The notes: generated by a model not told the origin, from the letters alone. DNA of 64,000 nucleotides from Epithemia pelagica (GCA_946965045.2 OX337238.1:3038001-3102000), one strand, 5' to 3'; counted from the first letter of the stretch, positions 36,901-48,967 are shown. Program-made: numbers and translations.

Positions 36901-38690
36901 TAAGCGTCTACTCCTTCAAAGGCCTTGGAGATGCATTGTAAGTGAAGAACAGAAGCATGAATACTTGCAAAGTCATCCTCAAACTTGAGAAAGGTGGCCA
37001 ACATCTTCTTGAGACGGCTTTCCATAGTTTCCGTTTCGTCCTTCACTTTCTTCAATGCATCGGACAAGAGCGACGAATATGCCTCTTTGTCCACGTGTTT
37101 CTTCAGAGACTTGGCTTGCGCCGATGATTTTACAGATTTCGATATATCTTCGTACAAGACGGTGACGTCGTACTCATTCAATGGAATTCCTTCTTGTACG
37201 TGGAACGAAATTGCGTCAATCTTTTGACTCAAATCGAGCAAACGCTGAATCACACGCAAGCGCAAGTCCTCGTATCGTGGGAATTTGCTTGCAGAATCCT
37301 GCAACGCCACAAGACCATGCGACGAGGACTCTTGAGCCACCACCAGACGGGATCCGAACGATCGTAAGGCCCGCGGAGACGACGAGCCAAACCATAGATC
37401 CATAAAGAGACTCAAATCGCGGAACTCCATATCATCCATGCAAGAATCGATATGAGACAAAAGGCTATCAATGCTATTTACCACTGAATCATGGGTTGCA
37501 TCGAAAAGCTGAACAAGGAACGGCGATTTGTCATCAATCGCCAGAATGTCTCTTGCCAACGATGCTTCTTGGAGCGTCAACCTGGCAAATGTCAAGTACA
37601 ACGCAAGTTCGTTCCGCAGATTCACCATGATAATGTTGGCAGTCGAACGCGCGTTGCTTGATTTTGACATGCTCCTATTCAACCGATCCGAGGATTCAAC
37701 AAGGGCAGAATGAAACTTCTGTACAAGACGACTTCGAATGTTGACGAAATTGTCAACTCGGCAGTTTCCGTGGAGGCGATCTACGATCCAATCTCCCAAT
37801 TTCCGAATGTTGAATCCTTTTCGTTCCTCGACGAACTTGCTCCAGTTGTCCCATTTGTTCTGACTCGACAGTTCTTCCAGCAAAACGGCGGCAGAGAAGC
37901 CTTTCTGAAGTTGGACAAGCATTGCCTCTCCTTCCGCACAAGCATGAGCCATGATAGAAGCAGTGTCTCCCTTGTCTCCAAAGGTCCAAGATTCCTCGTT
38001 CAACATATCCGCCATGTTATCTTCTACGACGTCTTGGAATGCCCTCTTCGATAAGGGCAATGATTCCAGAGAAGGATCTTCTCGCTCCCATGTATCACTG
38101 GTTTCTAGAGAATCGTCTTCCAAACATGAGGCCTCCGGAACCTGTAGAAAAGACCGAGCTTCTTTCGCCGAGAGGATCGTTCCGGATCCCAAACTTCCCA
38201 CCTTCGAAGGAGTCGCGATCTTGTCGACATTAGGAACTGGAACGTCTGTTTGGCGTTCTGGAATGAGCGGTGTTTCTTCTCGTGCAATTGAGAAGTATGG
38301 GTGCACCATGTGGTAAATGACATTGTATACAGCGATGATGAAGAAAAAGAAGACATAGAGGAACAAAACGAAGATAGTTTGCTCGTAGCATGACTCATGG
38401 AATTGCGGAGGAGAGGAATTCGAGGTTTTCGCGTCACGCCCTGATGGACGAGTGGATGGGCGCCGCGTCTTCCGAAGGACTTGGTTGTTGTTACCTCCTT
38501 TCGCTTTTGGAGTCTCCTCATTGGACACGAGCTCCTCGGAAGGAGTACGTTCCGTGAGTGACTCATCGTCACTAACCCACTGGTTCAGTGTCATGGTGAT
38601 CGGCTGCAACTCCACCCACAGTACGGAAACAAGGATGGCCCGAACGAAAAAAACTGGAAGACCATCCAACTGGTCCGTTTCCATCTGCAC
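33966..38690 (-). CDS. SecA-like SF2 ATPase + DnaJ domain protein, paralog 2, with an N-terminal TM segment instead of the GTPase; one frameshift
   Basis: Introns 35128-35202 and 34627-34697 sit at the same positions as in paralog 1. Motifs TGEGKS, DEVD, GRGTD, QIKGRAARQG and HPD. One extra base in the C6 run at 35296-35301. 38690 is a GTG; ATGs are at 38684 and 38594. Confidence 0.82.
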
Positions 38691-39345
38691 GCAGGCAAGA
38701 CTTTGCGGTGAAGGAAGATTTTAGACTTTTCTGGGAAGATCACGTTCGCGTGATGCTGGACATCAGTCTGTGTCCCAACCGTTCAGTCACATGAAAGCCA
38801 ACCGCCATGGACGAATTCCTTTTCCGAAAGTCCGAAACTTCCGCCGTATCGCAAACGAAATCATTCATCCGTGTCGAACTTGGAGTGTGACACATGCTGC
38901 CGCCAACACGGACTCTGCGAGACACATTGCATCTTGTCGATACAAAAGAGGTCCTCGTTCGGTCCTATCAAACCAACTATCGGAAGCGCTCGCTGTTGAG
39001 TAGTACGACTGATAAGAACTTGTTTGTCATCATGGTAGGAAAGGGCGATCAGCAGTGGTGTCAATGTCATCTTGTCAGGAATTTAGATACTCAAATATTA
39101 GTGGGGTATGTGGATCTTCCAAAGGAACCAGTTGCATCTGAGGAGTAAATACAATAAAACCTTCTATATCATTGCTAGTTTAGAATCCCAGCGGTTGATG
39201 GAAGGTAGAGTTAAAGGCGTCCCTACTAACAATAGGTTATGTTGTCCGTCAGAGACGGTCAGTGACAGACTGTGGGACGATGGCAATGAAGAAGGAGGAT
39301 GACGAGGAATGGAAAAGAACCATGGCAGCAGCCACGAAAATGCGA

Positions 39346-40132
39346 GATATGGCACATCCCATGGACGACAAGCCATTGTCACATGAAACCCATCGTCCTC
39401 GTTCGTTTCACAGTTCATATTTGCGAATGGCCATGACGCAAACTCCCAAGATTACTTTGGGCGTCGCCCTGTTCGAGAGGTCTAGGTAGAGCCTAGCTAC
39501 GTTCCAAACGCCGTCCCTTACGGTTGAGACAATGATTTGATTTCTGGCCCAATACAGACCCGGTAGCAAAAACAATCCAGTGATAAAGCGAGCCAAAGCC
39601 AATCGGTCTACGGAGGGAAAGCAGAAAGCAGTCATTGTCAAAAAGCGAGAACCAAAAAGTGACAGTCAGCGCAGGGCTATTCAAGAGAACCAAACAAGGT
39701 GGTCCGAAGGAATATCTTGAGCTGCGAGTCAACCTAAATTGTACGTCATGCCTCAAATTACGAGTAATAATCTATCATCCATCGAGCCCGATCAGATTCT
39801 AGAGAGACTTATCCATTCACATTTGAAAGAGAAGGCTATAATAAAAATAAATTCAGTCTTGTAGGGACTGGGGGACTTACGTGGAAGTTGCTCTTGCTCA
39901 CTTTTTCCTTTCTGATCATATCTGCGTCGCGCATCTCTCTATCAGCCACGGAAAACCCGATCAAAGCGACGTGAGTCATATTGCACGGATACGCAACATC
40001 ACTGCTCGTCGTCTTCACCTCATCAACTTGCCCTGCCGGGAATTGGATCACTGGATTCAGATGTCCTGTTTCAAACTATGCCGTCCGTCCAAATGTGACG
40101 TACCACACAAACCACAGTGATTCGAAGGATCG
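39346..40132. repeat. Diverged direct repeat, copy A (partner at 43018-43862)
   Basis: Shared blocks such as gtgataaagcgagccaaagccaatcggtcta, ggaatatcttgagctgcgagtcaa, catccatcgagcccgatcagattcta and accacacaaaccacagtgatt, in the same order in both copies. Ends are approximate. Confidence 0.85.
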
Positions 40133-40914
40133 TAACCCTGCAACGAAGACTACTACAGCAGCAACTAGGATGATGATCGAAAAGAAAAAAATGAACAACA
40201 GCGACATAAACGACGACTGAAGCAACAACAACAAGCAACTCTTTTGACTAATAGGGTTTTGACGCGACTTTTGAATGGCAACGAGCGATCCGAATCATAA
40301 TCACCTTAATTAGTTCCTCCAAGGCCGGGTCGGCTCCTCCTACTTTGTTCTAACTCGCTGCATTGAACGAAATCATAGTCGACTTCACCGCGGCCTTGAG
40401 ATTTTGCCAAAGTTTCTTGGCGTTCCCGAAATCATTGCCGACAGCAATTTTCAAGTCAAAGGGCAAACCACCCGTGATGGTAACATCGAGTGCAGTAGTG
40501 TACATGGTCATGGTGGCTTCTTTGAGGCTGTCCAATCCACAAACTTGCTTGTTCCAATGCAATGAGTGGCAAAGGTTGTCCCGCAACACAATTTCATACA
40601 CCACGGTACATACCGGCTTTCGAGACACCACCGACGATCAGTTGCGTCACTCCACTGCCCTTGCCATTTTCCTCCATCGCATCGTTTTTTTCTACTACCT
40701 ACAACGCACACCTCGACCAGATGCTCGGCTCTTTCCCCTACTTTCGTTTAACTCGTCGTCGTTGCACTGAAAACCACACGACTCCGTGTGGACGCAGCGG
40801 AGCGTTGCTGAGGATTTTCATTGTCTATTGCAATTCTAGAAAAATGGAAGATGACCCTTCCATGCCCTGTTCTTTCATCTTGTCTCCCCCAATGGCAGCA
40901 CAGTACCCATCATG

Positions 40915-42194
40915 TTAGCAATTCGCGTTGGAAATTTCGGCGGGGGTGTCGCCTTCGACCACTGGTATCCGATTGTTGTTTCCACACGATGTGGCACCTG
41001 TCTGGTACAAGAACGGATTCTCCCGTACTTCTTCAGCCCACCCATAGTTGTTGTCCATGGCCGTGGGTTTCATCCACCAATACACCATAATCATGGGCAA
41101 ATCCAAGGTCCCTTCCCCGCCATCGTCGTCCAGATTGTCGGTGGTATCAAATTCGTGGGGCGTAAAGCTCCGGTGGGCGTGAAAGCCATACGGCGTTCCG
41201 CCAAAATTACCCTTGCTGGCAAAGGTGTGCGCTTCCGTGTCAATCCCCGACACATTGGACCAGGTCCGCCACCACCCTCGACCGGCAATTTGCCAATATC
41301 CCTCTTGAGCCGCGTGTCGGTGACTGGGATAACACACTCCCCCTTCCATGGCGGCAAAGCCCAAGACGGAATACGTGTCACGATGCGGGAACATTTGCCA
41401 AAGGTACTCCGCAACATATCGGGTGGGGCCGCCAGTAATGTAAAATTATCCGCACCCGGTTCTGGCAGGGATACTACGCCTTTGACCAAATCGACCAGGG
41501 CTTGGGGAAAGACGGCCAATTCTTTGCCAGTGGCATCGGTGGAATTGGTAAACAGAATCTCGGAGGAACCATCACGCGACGATGTTCCATTGTCGTCGTC
41601 GTCGAAAACCACCAGATAGGTTCCAAAACTCACCACCAAACCAATGAGTACCACCAACAGGATGGTATTGGTAGTGAAGAGTCGTCGAGCGCGATTGTCC
41701 ACAAGGAGCTCTGTCGGTCCATCCTCATCATTGTGATGGTCTTCCACTTCAGAAACATTTGTACGACCCGATAACCCGGCAGCACCGTCCTCGATATCTC
41801 CACCGGCTGCCATGAATTCCGGTTCTTGTCCATTATTGGCTGCCATGGATTCCGGTTCTTCCCCCTCATTTATTGCCATGGATTCCGGTTCTTCCCCATG
41901 ATCATTATTACCACCATCATTGCGCCGAGACAAATCCACCATGGCAATGTCCCCCAGGTTCTCGTCGTTGCCTGGATCCATCACTCCTTCACTACGAGGA
42001 GGCGACGACGATGGAGGAACTTCTTGGACATGCATGTCATCCTCGACAAATGCCTCCGGTGTGTTGGCAGGTTCATAAAAAATGATTTCGTCTTCTCCTC
42101 CTCCTTTTGTAGGTCCATACATGGTTTCCTCATCCATTGTTTCTTGCACCTTTTCTTCTTCTCCTTCTTCTTCTTCCTTCACGGAAAATGTCAT
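40915..42194 (-). CDS. Membrane-anchored cupin resembling DddL/DddQ DMSP lyases (PF16867-like), split across two frames
   Basis: Frame 1 gives an acidic N-terminus and TM TILLVVLIGLVVSFGTYLVVF. A second frame, open from about 41445 to 40915, gives LGFAAMEGGVCYPSHRHAAQEGYWQIAGRGWW...FHAHRSFTPHEFDT...PMIMVYWW. The frames join with one extra base at the A4 run 41442-41445, or via a weak 71-nt intron 41477..41407. Confidence 0.7.
41809..41898. repeat. 33-bp coding tandem repeat (about 2.7 copies, GEEPESMAINE-type)
   Basis: gccatg(g/a)attccggttctt recurs at 41809, 41842 and 41875. Confidence 0.9.
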
Positions 42195-43017
42195 CCCATC
42201 TTCTTTTCCGTCGTCGTCGTCGTTGGTGGTGGATCAATTAGGATCTTCTTCATTCATAGGACCGTCGTCGTCGTCGTTGTTGTTGTTGTTGTTGTCACCA
42301 CCAGTCGTCATTGTCGTCAGAGGGTCCGTCATGGCCGACGGCTCCTTGGTCATGTTTTCTTCTTCCAAATCCAACGAGGATGACATGATTTTCTGTTCCA
42401 TGCACTTTTATCCTCGGTTTTTTTGGATCTAATAGCGCAACGATGAGGATTGACGGTGTCCAAGAAGAGCCACCCAAAGTCGTGATTAGTCGATAGTTAG
42501 CCCCCAGCGAGATTAGTGACTGAGTAGGTTCCAATCTTCTGTTAGACTTAAACCACATAAAGTACGACACACATGCGACTATTTGACTATGATTGGGAGT
42601 AAACGCATGTGCCGAAGAAAAAGTATCTTTGGCAATCGGCATTCGATAAGACGACCGGAAGGCGACCAAGATTCATGGTGGCGTGAATCCGGAAGCACAT
42701 GTTCGAATTCACCCGACAATGGATCAATCCCTGAACGCCAATGATTCTTGGCCTTTCTCCCAAGCAACTACCTCTAGCTAGTTGGCGGTGTTGTACCTAT
42801 CACGTCCGTCTTGGTCCAATCACGGGCCGAGCGCATCGGTCGACCGTAGCCACTGGGAAGTTCCATCCTTCGCAAGCATGGAAAATCTCTCTCTCTCTCT
42901 CTCCTCACTATGTAGGATCTTACATCAATCAACATGCTTGGAATTGTCCATTGCTATAGATCACGATACTTGCAAACGAACCAACTGTCAAACTCACTCG
43001 GCCTTGTCTCAATCCCC

Positions 43018-43862
43018 GACATGTGGTACATTTCATGGACGACGACAAGCCATGGTCACAGGGAAGATATTGTCCTCGTTCGTGTCACAGTTCCTGTTTG
43101 CGAATGATGGTAGCAAACAGGATGCAACCTCCCAAGATCGTACTTCTACGAAAAAGGTAAAGGTCTTGCTAGAGGTGGAGGCGAGCTAGAGGTTCCAAAC
43201 GGTCACTCAAGGCTGAGAGAATCTGCCTTTTTCTGACTTGTCAGCCATTACAGAATAGAATACAAATCCGGTACCAACAACAACCCTGTGATAAAGCGAG
43301 CCAAAGCCAATCGGTCTACTCGTACGTGTAGGGACAGGTAATAGTCAATCCTCTCAATGCGAGCAGAACCAAAAAGTGACGGTCAGCTCAGGGCTATTCT
43401 AGAACCGAACCAGATGGTCCGAAGGCTGTTGACGGTCTCATCAAGCTCCATGGAATATCTTGAGCTGCGAGTCAATCAATTGTATAAGTATTTCTTCATA
43501 TTAATGTAGCATCCATCGAGCCCGATCAGATTCTAAAGACTCATCCATTCACATTGGTACGGGAGGCTGTAATCAAGATGAATTCAATCTTGTAGGGACT
43601 GGGGGGCTGACGTGGCACTCGCTCTTGCTCACTTTTCCCCTTTCTGATATTCCTCATTTCTCCATCGCGCATCTCTCTAGCGTTTAGACGACATGGGTCA
43701 TGTTGCACGGCTACAATACGCAACATCGCTTCTCGTCGTCTTCACCTCACCAACTTGCTCTGGTGGGAACTGGCTCACTGGATTTGATTGTCCTGTTTCA
43801 ACATATGCCGTCCGTCCGAATGTCCCGTACCACACAAACCACAGTGATTGGACGGATCGTGT
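43018..43862. repeat. Diverged direct repeat, copy B (partner at 39346-40132)
   Basis: See copy A. Confidence 0.85.
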
Positions 43863-44006
43863 CATGTTGGCTCAACATCTTGGAAGAACCATGTCACTTG
43901 TTTGAGATTTGTGATGGAAAAACTAACGACTCCTCACAAATTCTGAACACGAGGTCACCTCAAACTTGGCTCTCATAAAATTGTCATTTCGACAAAATCA
44001 CTCATC

Positions 44007-46396
44007 ATGTGTTCGACAACGTCCTCTCTTGCCAATTCCTTTCTGCTTGTGCTTCTTCTTGCTTTGTCATCCTCCTCAAGCCATGCCATTGAGTTTCCCA
44101 ATCTTCGGCACCTGTCCCAACTTGCGGCGCAAGGAGATTTGGAGGACCGACTTCATGTGAAATTCAATCCTCCGCAAGCATCGGCTACTACTAGCAGCGG
44201 CAACACCACCACCACCACAAAGGAGGCCAATCTCGACAATGACAGCGACCAAGAAGATGTCATTTTGTGGGAACGTGCCAACGATATCTTACAGAATGTC
44301 TTGAGCGACGACTGCCATGCCGTTGAGCGACTGTTTCGTCCCGCGGGTCGTTTCGAAGATGCTCATCGTGAGGCCGGATTGACGCGTTGGTTCGTGTACG
44401 ATTGCAGCACCAACAACAGTACTACGAACACGACGCAAGATCCACCCGAGGAACACGGCGACGACTCGGGTACACAAGCTACGGAAACCTCGGGTCACAT
44501 GGCCGTGTCGGCTCTGACCAAACTCCAAGAATGGTTCGACCATATCGACGACCCCAACCAAGATTCTGTGTGGAGTATGGAATTTGTCACTGCAGAACAC
44601 AAGGTGGAAGAAACGGTCCTTGCTGGAAGTCGACAAGACATTCCCATTTCCACGAGGGACCAAGCTTTGGAGACCGGACCTACCGGTTTGTCAACCTCAA
44701 CCACCTCGGCCATTCCGAACGATCCCTTGCTGTCATTCCAAGATCATTACGACGCCATTCAATTGCCTGCAGCATGGCAGATCATGACCGATTCCAACGC
44801 GTGGCCGCAATGCAAAAATGTGGTAGTCCAGGTACTGGACTCTGGATGGGATACCGATCATGTTGATTCGGGAGGTATGTTCGTTCCGCATCCGATAGGA
44901 CTGGCGGATTGTTTGCTCTCGTCTTTATGTAACACGTATGGAGACTCCTCACGACTTGCATTTGCTCTTCTTCTGCAGTCAATCAATGGACCAATCCAGG
45001 CGAGGACTGTTCGGGAACCGGCAGTGGCAATGGTATCGACGATGACAACAATGGTTTTGTGGACGACTGTCATGGATACAATCATGGCGATCGAACCTCG
45101 GCCAATCTCGTTGGGAGTAGCAATCATGGAAGTCATTGCACCGGTACCATTGGTGCGACCACCGACAATGATTTGGGTGTCGCTGGAGTGGCAGGAGGAC
45201 GAGGAAATCATCCGGGTGTTTCCATTTTGACATCTGTCGGATTTGGTCGAGTCGGATCGCGGGGATTTGCCGAAGCCATTGTGTACGGTGCCGATATGGG
45301 CTCTCACATTAGTTCCAATTCGTGGGGATACACCTCTCCCAATGTCGCCGATCGAGCCGTCTTGGAAGCCATTAGTTTTGCCACTTCCCGAGAGGTTCTG
45401 GTTGTCTTTGCGGCTGGCAACAGCAATTCCAATCAAGCTTTTTATCCAGCCTTTTCCAATGAAGTGGTTGCTGTGGCCGCAACCGACAATACGGGAGCTG
45501 CCGCCTCCTTTACCAATTACGGATCGTGGGTGGATATTGCCGCGCCTGGTGTCCGTATTGCCTCGACTGGATTGTCGGCGTCTCAACCCAGTGTGAATTC
45601 CGATGAATACTTGTATTTGAGTGGTACCAGTATGGCGTGTCCTCACGTGTCCGGTGTCCTGGCCTTGGGAAAATGTTTGAATCCCTCCGCCACCTCGGCC
45701 GAATTGAAAGGCTGTTTGCTAAACACGGCCACTCCGCTCAACAGCAACCGGGATCTCGGCCGAGGTATGGTCAATCCACCCGAGTTTCTCAAATGTGTCC
45801 AGACCATTGCAACGGACTCGTCACCAACCGTATCGCCCACACAGAGTCCCACCGATAAGCCATCAACGGCCACTCCGACCAGCACGCCTACTAGCAATCC
45901 CACTGCAGCTCCTGCCAACAATCAATGTCGGGTCGATCAATGTCAAGAGGCCACACCGGATATTGCGGGATGTGCCAGCTGCCGTTCTTGTCAAGAGGCG
46001 GTTTGTGAAGCCGATGCCTTTTGTTGTGGCAACGAATGGGATGGTCTTTGCGTGATTCAAGCACGCGATTTGTGTCCCTGTCCATGCGCACGAAATGACG
46101 ACGAATGTACTTCAGGCTGCGGCAATTGCCGTCAAATACGAAGCAACGAAGAAGGCTGTTCCTGTGAGTCCTGTCGTGACCAAGTGTGTGCCCTCGCTCC
46201 CGACTGTTGTACCCAAGGCTGGGGACTCTTGTGTGCGGTCCGTGCCGTTTTGTTTTGTGACACTTGTACAAGTAGTGCTGCATCCACCACCTCGTCCACC
46301 AAAGACCATCCATTGGACGCTCTAGAACTCAAGCATAAAGATCAGGAATCCATGATTGCGGCCCTCTTTTCTCCCACAGATACGAATCATAATTAA
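44007..46396 (+). CDS. Secreted subtilisin-like S8 serine protease with prodomain, Thr/Pro linker and two Cys-rich C-terminal repeats (761 aa)
   Basis: Exons 44007-44874 and 44979-46396; intron GTATGT..CAG. Signal peptide present. Catalytic triad VLDSG, HGSHCTG and GTSMACPHV. Spliced NGIDDDNNGFVDD motif. Confidence 0.92.
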
Positions 46397-46650
46397 GCCA
46401 CAAAAGTGCTCTTCTCATCCTGCATAAGGTGCTGTGGATCGGGACACCTCGGTTCATTCTTTAATTGAATAGCTCATGTCATAATCTTCGCACTAGATGA
46501 AATTTGAAATAGACTGTTCTCCTTTTTTATTCCGACGACAGCAGCTTCTATGAGGACAAGCAGCAGCAAACACTAAACAATCAAGAATCTCCTGGCTCCA
46601 AGGTAGCCCAATTTTTCATAGAGATCTGTCGCCTTTCAAGAGATAAGCGT

Positions 46651-48257
46651 TTAAGAGGACTGATCCTGCACAAAGCTTAATGCATCCATTTCTTTCTTGC
46701 ACGAAGCAGTGTACTCATGATTGATGGCAATTCTGGATTCAAGAGACTTCACTTTTCGGAGAAGATGAATTTTTTCGTGGATGCCTTCGATCGTTTTCAT
46801 TTCGGACTTTGTCTTGTCAGTTTCGTCTTTCATGTCTTTCACAGAGCGAAATTTGTCGTCGCTGGCAAGAGATTGAAGAATGACGAGCAAATCTTGTGCA
46901 TCGGCGCCCTGTTGCAAAATATCTTGGTCGTTGTATTCCATTCTAGCCTTTTGGACGATGGCTTCGAGGTGTTCCATTTCTTTGTCGAGCTCGGCACGAC
47001 ACGAAAACTTGTTCTGTAATGGCGCCATGCAGAAGTTAAGATATGAATTAAAAAAAAATCAATTCTCACAGTAACAGGATGCAAGGATAACAAAAGTGTT
47101 CGTACCTTGAGTTGTTGTTTCTTTGTGATCGGTGGAAGTGTTTCACAAGTGTTAACCTTGTATCCAGCAATAACAACAAGCCCATTTGACGTCATAACCA
47201 TGCTACATCCGTCTCGTACCTTCGTTAAATTTGGTAGATACCAAACCACGCCGTCTTTTGTGTCCAGCACTTTTACCGAGTTTAAGCTGGTCAGTCCCCT
47301 GCTACCTCCTGCCACGACAAGATTCGACCCCAGACTTGAAACAGCATGTGAACTTCTCGGCTCAAGATGAGCTAGATCTGGGTCAGTAATCCAAGAGGAT
47401 GCAAAGGTGCCCTCGGTTCTGTTCACATTTCCATGAAACTCCAAATACTCCAAAGAAGATCTTTCTCCACGAGCACTGCGGTAGGCATGGCTCTCTGTTT
47501 CTCCGCCAACAATGTAGATGCGGTTCCCAATTGAAGCGATTCGAAGCCGACCGCGAACAATGTTCATTGAGGGTCCCTCAACTACCAAATGTTCGCGTTC
47601 ATTTGATGTATCAATCACGTCCAAGGATGGCGAAGCAGAATACGAATGCTCTCCTCCCGCAACAAAAGTATACCGATTGTACACTGCGACTGCAGTCCAT
47701 TCTCTTCTCGGTTTGTAAATTCGATGCTTCAATGTTCTCCATCTCACTTTTTTGTTTCCTGGGTTTGACATCATCAAATCAGCAACGCTTATATATTCAA
47801 TCGTAGACAAGTAGGAATTGCCATCATACCCTCCAATGGCAAACACCCAACCATTGCAGACCACAGCTGCATGTCCATTCCTCTTTTCGTTCATTTTTGG
47901 TCCCTCTCGCCATTTCTTAGAGTCCTTTCCAACATACAATACAATCACGGAGTCAGATGCGGATTAAGTCTCAGTCTGTCCGCCCAAAACCACAATAGCT
48001 TGCTCCTCTTGATTTTCAGGATTCTCAAGGACTACTGACGCATGATGGGATCGCCATCCACCCAGAAGTGGAGGAATTTCTTTATCTTTCCATTGCGGCT
48101 CTTTGTTCTCTGCCAAGTTGGTGAAAACAAGGCCCGACAAGGTTGCGTCCTCTTGCACGGTACTTGCTTGTACCACAACAAGCAAGCCAACGAGCAGCGC
48201 GACGAACCACCGCCACTTAATAGAGGATTCATGTGGCTTTGAAGCGGAACGATGCAT
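46651..48257 (-). pseudogene. Kelch gene K4 (signal peptide + Kelch + coiled-coil exon) with an in-frame TAA
   Basis: ORFs 48257-47964 and 47948 onward are in one frame, separated by TAA at 47964-47966. Phase-0 intron 47014-47105 after KKQQLK. Confidence 0.8.
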
Positions 48258-48967
48258 CCTCTATGTTTGTGTGTTTACTCTTTTGTGCTCAGAGTGTGTG
48301 ATCAATTCCGCGTTCAGAAGGTTGTGTGTGCGATGCAAGTCTATGGTTCACACAGAGAGAATGTGACAGGGACAGACAGGGACGCGTTTGCGAGAAAATC
48401 CCATCCAAAACCATCCCCTTCGTCAACTCGGTCGCTTTTCATGATCACGATCGGATCGGGACTCGTTTGGAACTTGGAATTCTTTCCATCCTTCTGTATT
48501 CGTCTTGTCGTATTCGATGCAAGAAACACATATTATCATATCCGTTCGTTCATCATTGAGGCAACTCTCCTCTCTTCGATGCCTTGCTACTCACAAACCG
48601 TAATGTCACAATAATTATTTGTTGTGGGCTGAAACACGCGCGCACGTCGACATGAAAAAGGAGGCAGCCGAGCATGCCTGTGCTCGGATTTCACATGTAA
48701 ACTTGAAATATTTCTTAAATGTATTTCGGATAGTAGCATGGCTCGCGTCACATGCTTCTCACCCGCATGCCTTTCCAGACCATAAAGAGAATGGAAACTC
48801 ATCCGATGCCAAGGATGAAGATAAAAGACACCATGACGGCTTAAAGCAATGAACCACACTACCACTGCGAAGATTAGCATACTTTGGCAATCGATTCGTG
48901 GCGAGTTAAGATTGAATGTCGCCCGTCGCACCACCATACCGTTTGCAAATACACACGTCGACAATGA

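Follow-up and report, generated by a model that had tools for sequence, protein, structure and literature searches.

The locus at positions 40,915 to 42,194 of the window (the whole 64,000-nucleotide stretch of Epithemia pelagica DNA that was analysed) raises the question of whether two reading frames on its minus strand encode an intact, membrane-anchored DMSP lyase hidden by a frame break, or whether the break is itself a lesion. The original prediction favored the former: one added base, or a weak 71-nt intron, would fuse an acidic N-terminus and a single transmembrane segment to a DddL/DddQ-type cupin, possibly acquired horizontally, yielding a 426-aa protein. The two frames lie where that prediction placed them, with ORF calling on the window recovering a 367-aa ORF (42194..41091, ATG at 42194) and, in a different frame, a 159-aa ORF (41394..40915, stop codon 40917-40915).

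The upstream reading frame runs for 271 codons (41382..42194, minus strand), from the ATG at 42194 to an Ile codon at 41384-41382, and covers an acidic low-complexity N-terminus, a membrane helix and the start of a conserved, putatively extracytosolic domain. The anticipated acidic N-terminus and single transmembrane helix are both present: 48 D/E stand against 10 K/R in 185 aa, and the helix LFTTNTILLVVLIGLVVSFGTYLVVF (41604..41681, minus strand; Kyte-Doolittle maximum of 2.76 at residue 178) is preceded by RARR (41693-41682) and followed by DDDD. By the positive-inside rule, this arrangement suggests a single-pass type II topology with the N-terminus inside and the C-terminus outside. Where the conserved domain begins, the frame reads ...ALVDLV..LP...PPDMLRSTFGKCSRI and aligns with the N-terminal part of the homologs P0004-P0009, and a further protein, P0040, encoded on the contig L001, is 84% identical to this upstream part. 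The downstream reading frame (40918..41379, minus strand) supplies the C-terminal 154 cupin residues (DTYSVLGF...NANC), 98% identical by tblastn to residues 140-293 of the L001 domain. No second paralog was found in the window.

Comparison with the homologs locates the break precisely. Family homology of the upstream frame continues to the Ile at 41384-41382, and the downstream frame is homologous only from the Asp at 41379 (DTYSVLGFAAMEGGVCYPSH); the approximately 134 residues between these two points are present in every full-length homolog and absent from the window. Between the stretches matched by the two window frames, P0004-P0023 carry some 130 residues (WQC...WCGMP...YW..CV.PRAGYFNVLQC). 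Public contigs compared with the window revealed a second form bearing 403 letters between 41381 and 41382 in the sequencing runs X1, X3 and X4, and 403 equals 3 x 134 + 1, that is, the 134 conserved residues plus the single base needed to bring the two frames into register. A 30-nt loose end, read on the minus strand, runs into the window as ...CEDETDPRT-C-DTYSVLGF, which is the family motif C.D......C.T, and unitigs spanning the deletion junction were recovered at 75 nt in X1 and X3 and at 456 nt in X2. P0040 led to L001, a contig of an ENA assembly that is syntenic with the window, aligns collinearly to it across 12 kb at 91-94% identity, holds exactly 403 extra nucleotides (L001 6982-7384) after window position 41382, and carries all conserved blocks in one continuous frame save for a TAA. 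The SNPs separating L001 from the window are the same alternative letters seen in the runs, and L001 therefore represents the second haplotype. The window copy is thus a minus-strand deletion allele, lacking 403 bp at the junction 41381|41382 and shifted in frame.

Three other interpretations of this region were considered and set aside. The deletion ends share no bases, and a microhomology-mediated deletion was rejected when this comparison of the breakpoints found no microhomology; the 403 bp were also rejected as a transposon insertion in the other haplotype, as they encode the conserved residues of the family in frame. A downstream-frame stretch, YVAEYLWQMFPHR (41430-41380), had been read as the family's YQYW..CV.PR block and was dropped, since the upstream frame over the same DNA is the true homolog of the ...PPDML....GKC block.

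The second haplotype retains the 403 bp but is itself interrupted, in that the Lys codon of FGKCSRI (41394..41396, minus strand), AAA in the window haplotype, is TAA in L001, giving FG-stop-CSRI through a T>A change on the plus strand at window position 41396. This premature stop lies 12 nt upstream of the deletion point on the haplotype that bears the insert. For X1 and X3 the change at 41396 was inferred from unitig boundaries together with one unnamed alternative letter, not from a direct reading. A 75-nt unitig covering 41352-41426 with zero differences represents the deletion junction with AAA (depth 94 in X1, 49 in X3), and a 478-nt unitig (30 + 403 + 45 letters) has one other letter in 41382-41426 (depth 76 in X1, 80 in X3). 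The allele-specific unitigs end at 41426, which equals 41396 + 30, and the unitig common to both forms starts again at 41397, as is characteristic of a k=31 bubble at this position, 41396. X4 contains the insert-bearing form only, in a contig whose 6 differences within 41382-41520 comprise the five listed plus 41396. Across the three samples of this one study (X1 and X2 counted as one, X3, and X4), the deletion with Lys and the 403 bp with TAA are completely linked, and no intact allele combining the 403 bp with AAA was seen. An uninterrupted frame across the conserved domain was accordingly found on neither haplotype, one carrying the deletion and frameshift and the other the TAA. Because no intact copy was seen in three samples, the gene is most likely inactivated in Epithemia pelagica, and intact alleles may exist elsewhere. 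Among the four runs, no RNA run containing the locus was identified, and X1 and X3 resemble genome assemblies.

The upstream end of the gene may hold a further lesion. L001 opens its ORF about 65 codons further upstream (MSSSLDLEE...), through an acidic extension that is open in L001, and the in-frame extension of the window carries TGA (42234..42236, minus strand) where L001 has AGA (Arg). This TGA may mark a third lesion on the window haplotype or may simply fall in the 5'-UTR, and reads were masked at 42164-42285, the stretch that covers it.

Base differences between the two haplotypes, which could also be very close relatives, amount to 6-9% over 12 kb (window 37524-48390, L001 1-12969). 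The mosaics of SNP sets vary by run, extending up to 41058 in X1, up to 41338 in X2, up to 41751 in X3 and throughout in X4, which suggests old haplotypes recombining in a sexual population. Imperfect EEPESMA repeats occupy the acidic N-terminal region (window 41800-41900 against L001 6440-6555) and vary between haplotypes in number and sequence, with several small indels that keep the frame overall. Just downstream of the gene, L001 repeats a 384-bp unit 4.7 times (98% matches, L001 9067-10891) that is single copy in the window at approximately 39416-39782, and copies of this unit account for the four 50-aa genes called in L001. Just 12 nt separate the TAA from the start of the deletion in a gene that spans about 1.8 kb, a proximity that by a rough estimate would arise by chance in about 1-2% of cases.

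These observations bear directly on whether the window gene could be intact. The two frames are indeed parts of a single gene, and shifting by +1 or -2 joins them arithmetically, as a one-base sequencing error or a weak intron at 41400-41480 would require. An intron there would, however, remove the conserved ...LP...PPDMLRSTFGKC block, and it is excluded by the conserved residues that the upstream frame, homologous through 41382, encodes across this DNA; a base error is excluded because the reads reproduce the window exactly across 41400-41480 and the junction, with zero indels and no sequence-skipping joint in any run. The fused 426-aa product would also be without the 134 residues found in every full-length homolog, including the first strand of the barrel and three Cys that are nearly invariant, and we regard a functional type II DMSP lyase encoded by the window copy as scarcely credible. 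It is very improbable, too, that both lesions are artefacts of assembly or of mixing between related strains and that a normal intact copy exists. All runs do come from one study, X1 and X2 are probably the window's own sample, and Logan contigs drop rare variants; against this, the deletion junction accounts for roughly half of the local depth in each of two samples (X1/X2 and X3), with the unitig carrying the insert and the SNP making up the other half (94 vs 76 and 49 vs 80), while the separate ENA assembly has the TAA and X4 only the TAA haplotype. The hidden intact gene of the original prediction thus gives way to two disabled alleles, and in place of a missing base or a 71-nt intron there is a deletion of conserved codons.

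We then compared substitutions between the two haplotypes. Over the cupin part (462 nt), window and L001 differ by 14 synonymous and 3 non-synonymous changes (dS 0.154, dN 0.008, omega 0.054), and the part spanning the helix and early domain has an omega of 0.27. The cupin value shows that the gene was under constraint until recently. Inactivation is recent because dN/dS in the cupin part is only 0.05 between haplotypes, and the omega values imply that both lesions are young relative to the haplotype split.

To what family the inactivated gene belongs was addressed with profile and motif comparisons. The sole Pfam match of the 159-aa ORF in hmmscan is PF16867 (DMSP_lyase; E 6.6e-5, residues 10-44 only), in line with the original prediction, but the score of 23.2 bits for the window piece, like the 21.6 bits of the L001 piece, falls below the gathering score of 27 bits. 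All ten family members scanned matched PF16867 and no other family at E<0.04, with scores of 13 to 33 bits; four reached the gathering score (P0009 30.5, P0011 32.7, P0016 27.9, P0023 32.6) and six did not. The matches always fall on the motif region and take in approximately 35-75 of the 162 profile positions. An NCBIfam scan of the window protein gave no match.

The motifs that had been read from the sequence are nonetheless present, namely HRHAAQEGY, PHEFDTT and PMIMVYWW, and the His/His/Glu/His set with its Tyr is kept; what required correction was the spacing, which is G-F-x8-YP in place of x6, and the pattern H-x5-PH, which was off by one. Motif 1 (41296..41322, minus strand; H-x-H-x3-E-x-Y) provides two His, the Glu ligand and the Tyr of the cupin-DLL signature, motif 2 (41140..41160, minus strand) the predicted third His ligand, and the YWW that closes motif 2 (41074..41082, minus strand) a predicted aromatic active-site residue equivalent to Trp195 of the DddQ structure 5cu1. 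In the family, H, H, E and Y of motif 1 are invariant or nearly so, H214 and E215 of motif 2 and W241 are at least 90% conserved, and motif 1 is kept in nearly all members scanned, the exceptions being the complete sequence P0005 and a few fragments. Motif 1 aligns to HQHPAEEIY of 5cu1 (H139/H141/E145/Y147), the motif 2 His aligns with His180, and PHE(F/M)DTT and YWW align to PHA...LW. A profile of 26 members searched against the PDB matched only DddQ (5cu1, E 0.14), pairing VCYPaHaH..eEaYW with YYPFHQHPAEEIYF and h....PHE..t....M..vYWW with H...HPHATRT...FMALVLW. The residues that define the cupin-DLL superfamily in 5cu1 are His141, Glu145, Tyr147, His180, itself a metal ligand, and Trp195, together with the other motif 1 His (bioRxiv 10.1101/161257), which by our reading of the alignment is His139. 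In the algal family, whose sequences are otherwise 17% identical, each of these six residues is either invariant or conserved in at least 90% of members. Collectively, these data uphold the prediction of a eukaryotic gene for a cupin with a putative DMSP-lyase-like (cupin-DLL) metal site.

Structure prediction was consistent with this assignment. An AlphaFold (AF2) model built for the intact L001 domain (293 aa) from a 26-sequence alignment (pLDDT 85, pTM 0.87) shows a helical N-terminal part followed by a cupin barrel (strands 118-244). In Foldseek searches against the PDB, DddQ entries occupy ranks 1-4 (E 3.5e-7 to 2.6e-6), ahead of auxin-binding protein, DddK and a large number of further cupins, with more than 300 cupin matches at E<=1e-3 and DddQ at the top. 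VIA-align likewise places DddQ first (Z 9.6-10.1, approximately 160 aligned residues) but by a small margin over generic cupin-2 proteins (Z 9.7-9.0), and the best structural matches include DddQ, DddK and DddY. AlphaFold DB clusters returned generic cupins only, and an ESM Atlas feature search gave only meaningless low scores of 0.61 or less. Mapped onto the model, the 134 residues deleted from the window correspond to helices 14-18, 44-53, 61-65 and 101-117 and to strands 83-85 and 118-127, so that an in-frame fusion would still miss part of the fold. The deletion would thereby remove the predicted helical N-terminal part and first barrel strand.

We next considered who carries this gene. 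An exhaustive phmmer search with the downstream frame against 1.84 billion representative proteins returned 38 representatives at E<=1e-3, whose full-length members (including P0004, 447 aa; P0005, 624 aa; P0006, 459 aa; and P0009, 344 aa) share one long conserved domain. Its blocks follow a fixed order, beginning with ...ALV..V..LP....L.PPDM...L.G.C...D.Y, WQC, Y.PS...L, TG.SL and WCGMP, continuing with YW..CV.PRAGYFNVLQC, AVLG.AA.E..VCYPAH.H...E.YWQI.G.GWWRTW, PHE.DTT and M.VYWW, and ending with NY, SCG..R.IP and a C-terminal Cys. The named members come from the diatom Thalassiosira exigua, the pelagophyte Chrysophaeum taylorii, whose protein KAJ8598537.1 is annotated as a cupin domain-containing protein, and the dinoflagellates Durusdinium trenchii, represented by CAK9048574.1, and Polykrikos kofoidii; the remaining members are short contigs from environmental and run assemblies. 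No bacterial relative was present among the 38 phmmer matches or the 9 matches of a profile word search, and a pattern scan of 185,579 prokaryotic genomes found no prokaryotic relative. As far as these sequence searches reach, this is a small eukaryote-only family of diatoms, a pelagophyte and dinoflagellates, and the proposed horizontal acquisition is therefore unsupported. A literature search for a diatom or algal cupin-DLL family found no paper.

One lineage departs from the active-site pattern. In the P0005 cluster (7 members; ENA contigs up to 62.8 kb) the motifs read HRYNFESAY and TTIELDTT, with three of the four metal ligands lost, and P0005 itself has its ligands replaced and the rest of the domain kept. 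Given this loss, catalysis is not universal in the family, and the cluster may be a pseudo-enzyme branch.

Several features point to a lumenal or extracellular position for the cupin domain. The RARR before the helix and the acidic residues after it, six nearly invariant Cys in the family, and N-termini in P0012, P0016, P0022 and P0023 that are hydrophobic and by eye resemble signal peptides all argue for such a location, and the type II topology of the original prediction, with a lumenal or cell-exterior cupin, is supported as a probable N-in/C-out arrangement.

Taken together, the locus is very probably a recently arisen null allele of a single-exon minus-strand gene, and its family a eukaryote-only, secretory-pathway branch of the cupin-DLL proteins that would be a metal enzyme if intact. 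The intact product would comprise about 560-616 aa, made up of a cytosolic N-terminal stretch rich in acidic residues, a single membrane helix and a Cys-rich extracytosolic domain of about 300 residues, the C-terminal half of which is predicted to form the metal-binding cupin barrel. In intact members, a transition-metal centre of His/His/Glu/His type with adjacent Tyr and Trp may bind a small carboxylate substrate, and such proteins would act in the lumen or at the cell surface, in a lyase-type (beta-elimination) or related reaction.

Placing this branch among known cupins sharpens both its affinities and its differences. With the cupin-DLL superfamily (PF16867; bioRxiv 10.1101/161257) it has in common H-x-H-x3-E-x-Y, the motif 2 His, the terminal Trp/Tyr and the cupin barrel. 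The algal clade differs in being apparently eukaryote-only and situated behind a signal peptide or type II anchor, in an additional N-terminal part of about 140 residues with conserved Cys (WQC, WCGMP, CV.P..GY.NVL.C), and in that PF16867 covers the motif region only, most algal members scoring near or below threshold. DddQ of Ruegeria/Roseovarius (PDB 4LA2, 5CU1, 4B29, 5JSP) is the best structural match, over about 160 residues that include the DddQ N-terminal helices. It is, however, bacterial, approximately 200 aa long, and 15-17% identical to the algal protein. To our knowledge, DddQ has no signal peptide, no membrane anchor and no conserved disulfide cysteines. DddL has the cupin-DLL motifs in common by way of PF16867, and no DddL sequence or structure appeared among the matches of any search. 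Membership in the characterised DddL/DddQ-type clade is not borne out at the sequence level, with a bacterial Ddd protein in 0 of the 38 phmmer and 0 of the 9 profile matches, the Pfam score under its threshold, low identity to DddQ, and DddQ barely above generic cupins in the structure searches. Alma1-type algal DMSP lyases fill the same proposed ecological role in algae and are unrelated in fold and mechanism, belonging to the Asp/Glu racemase superfamily and depending on Cys instead of a metal cupin (bioRxiv 10.1101/161257). The implied absence of cupin lyases from eukaryotes no longer holds, as DddF, a fungal cytoplasmic DMSP lyase that is DddK-like (approximately 30% identity to DddK), was published in 2026 (ISME J, PMC13738216). 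DddF demonstrates that Ddd-type cupins occur outside bacteria; by description it is set apart as cytoplasmic and fungal from the algal family, which is probably extracytosolic.

Whether intact members cleave DMSP is a separate matter. The case that they are genuine DMSP or DMSOP lyases, carried by marine algae on the cell surface or within a secretory compartment and now being lost by this diatom, draws on the six retained active-site residues, on PF16867 as the sole Pfam match, on the Ddd proteins among the best structural matches, and on named members from marine lineages. Dinoflagellates, including Symbiodiniaceae, and pelagophytes are rich in DMSP. Such cleavage is possible because the motifs fit, the members are marine algae and fungal DddF offers a eukaryotic precedent. 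Weighing against it, DMSP lyases make up only a small minority of cupin-DLL proteins, and the activity of DddQ itself is weak and argued to be promiscuous (Lei et al., bioRxiv 10.1101/161257). The identity to DddQ is moreover low, the Cys-rich N-terminal part has no Ddd counterpart, some family members have lost ligands, and the gene is dispensable in Epithemia pelagica. We consider this account of the family rather unlikely. DMSP or a related sulfonium compound stands as a minority candidate for the substrate, another substrate being more likely, and DMSP or DMSOP lyase activity of intact members would be a possible but not the default expectation, and one that we consider unlikely.

A non-catalytic alternative, in which the family consists of secreted binding or structural cupins resembling auxin-binding protein or germin-like storage cupins and the metal site is structural, we judge improbable. 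Auxin-binding protein 1 is at Foldseek rank 5, the P0005 lineage has kept its domain after losing three ligands, and disulfide-forming Cys are abundant in what is probably an extracytosolic protein, as in germins. Yet among sequences that otherwise share 17% identity, H, H, E, Y, H and W never fall below 90% conservation or do not vary at all, a pattern typical of a catalytic site. The preferred reading is a putative metal enzyme in intact members and a recent loss in Epithemia pelagica.

The locus is therefore best annotated as a pseudogene allele and not as a corrected 426-aa protein. Two independent lesions on very divergent haplotypes (dS 0.15), following long purifying selection, make it a case of recent gene loss. 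It is quite unlikely that the family represents a second, unrecognised class of eukaryotic DMSP/DMSOP lyase, a disulfide-stabilised surface or secretory metal cupin of diatoms, pelagophytes and dinoflagellates including coral symbionts; if it did, this class would explain lyase activity not covered by the Alma enzymes, and Epithemia pelagica would have been caught losing its lyase through two independent null alleles 12 nt apart. Were an intact member to cleave DMSP, the family would add an algal route, facing outward, by which DMS and acrylate are released in the lineages that are dominant DMSP producers, and would provide marker genes for metatranscriptome surveys. Even with another substrate, it would be an uncharacterised, conserved family of candidate extracytosolic metalloenzymes in marine algae with a clear predicted active site.
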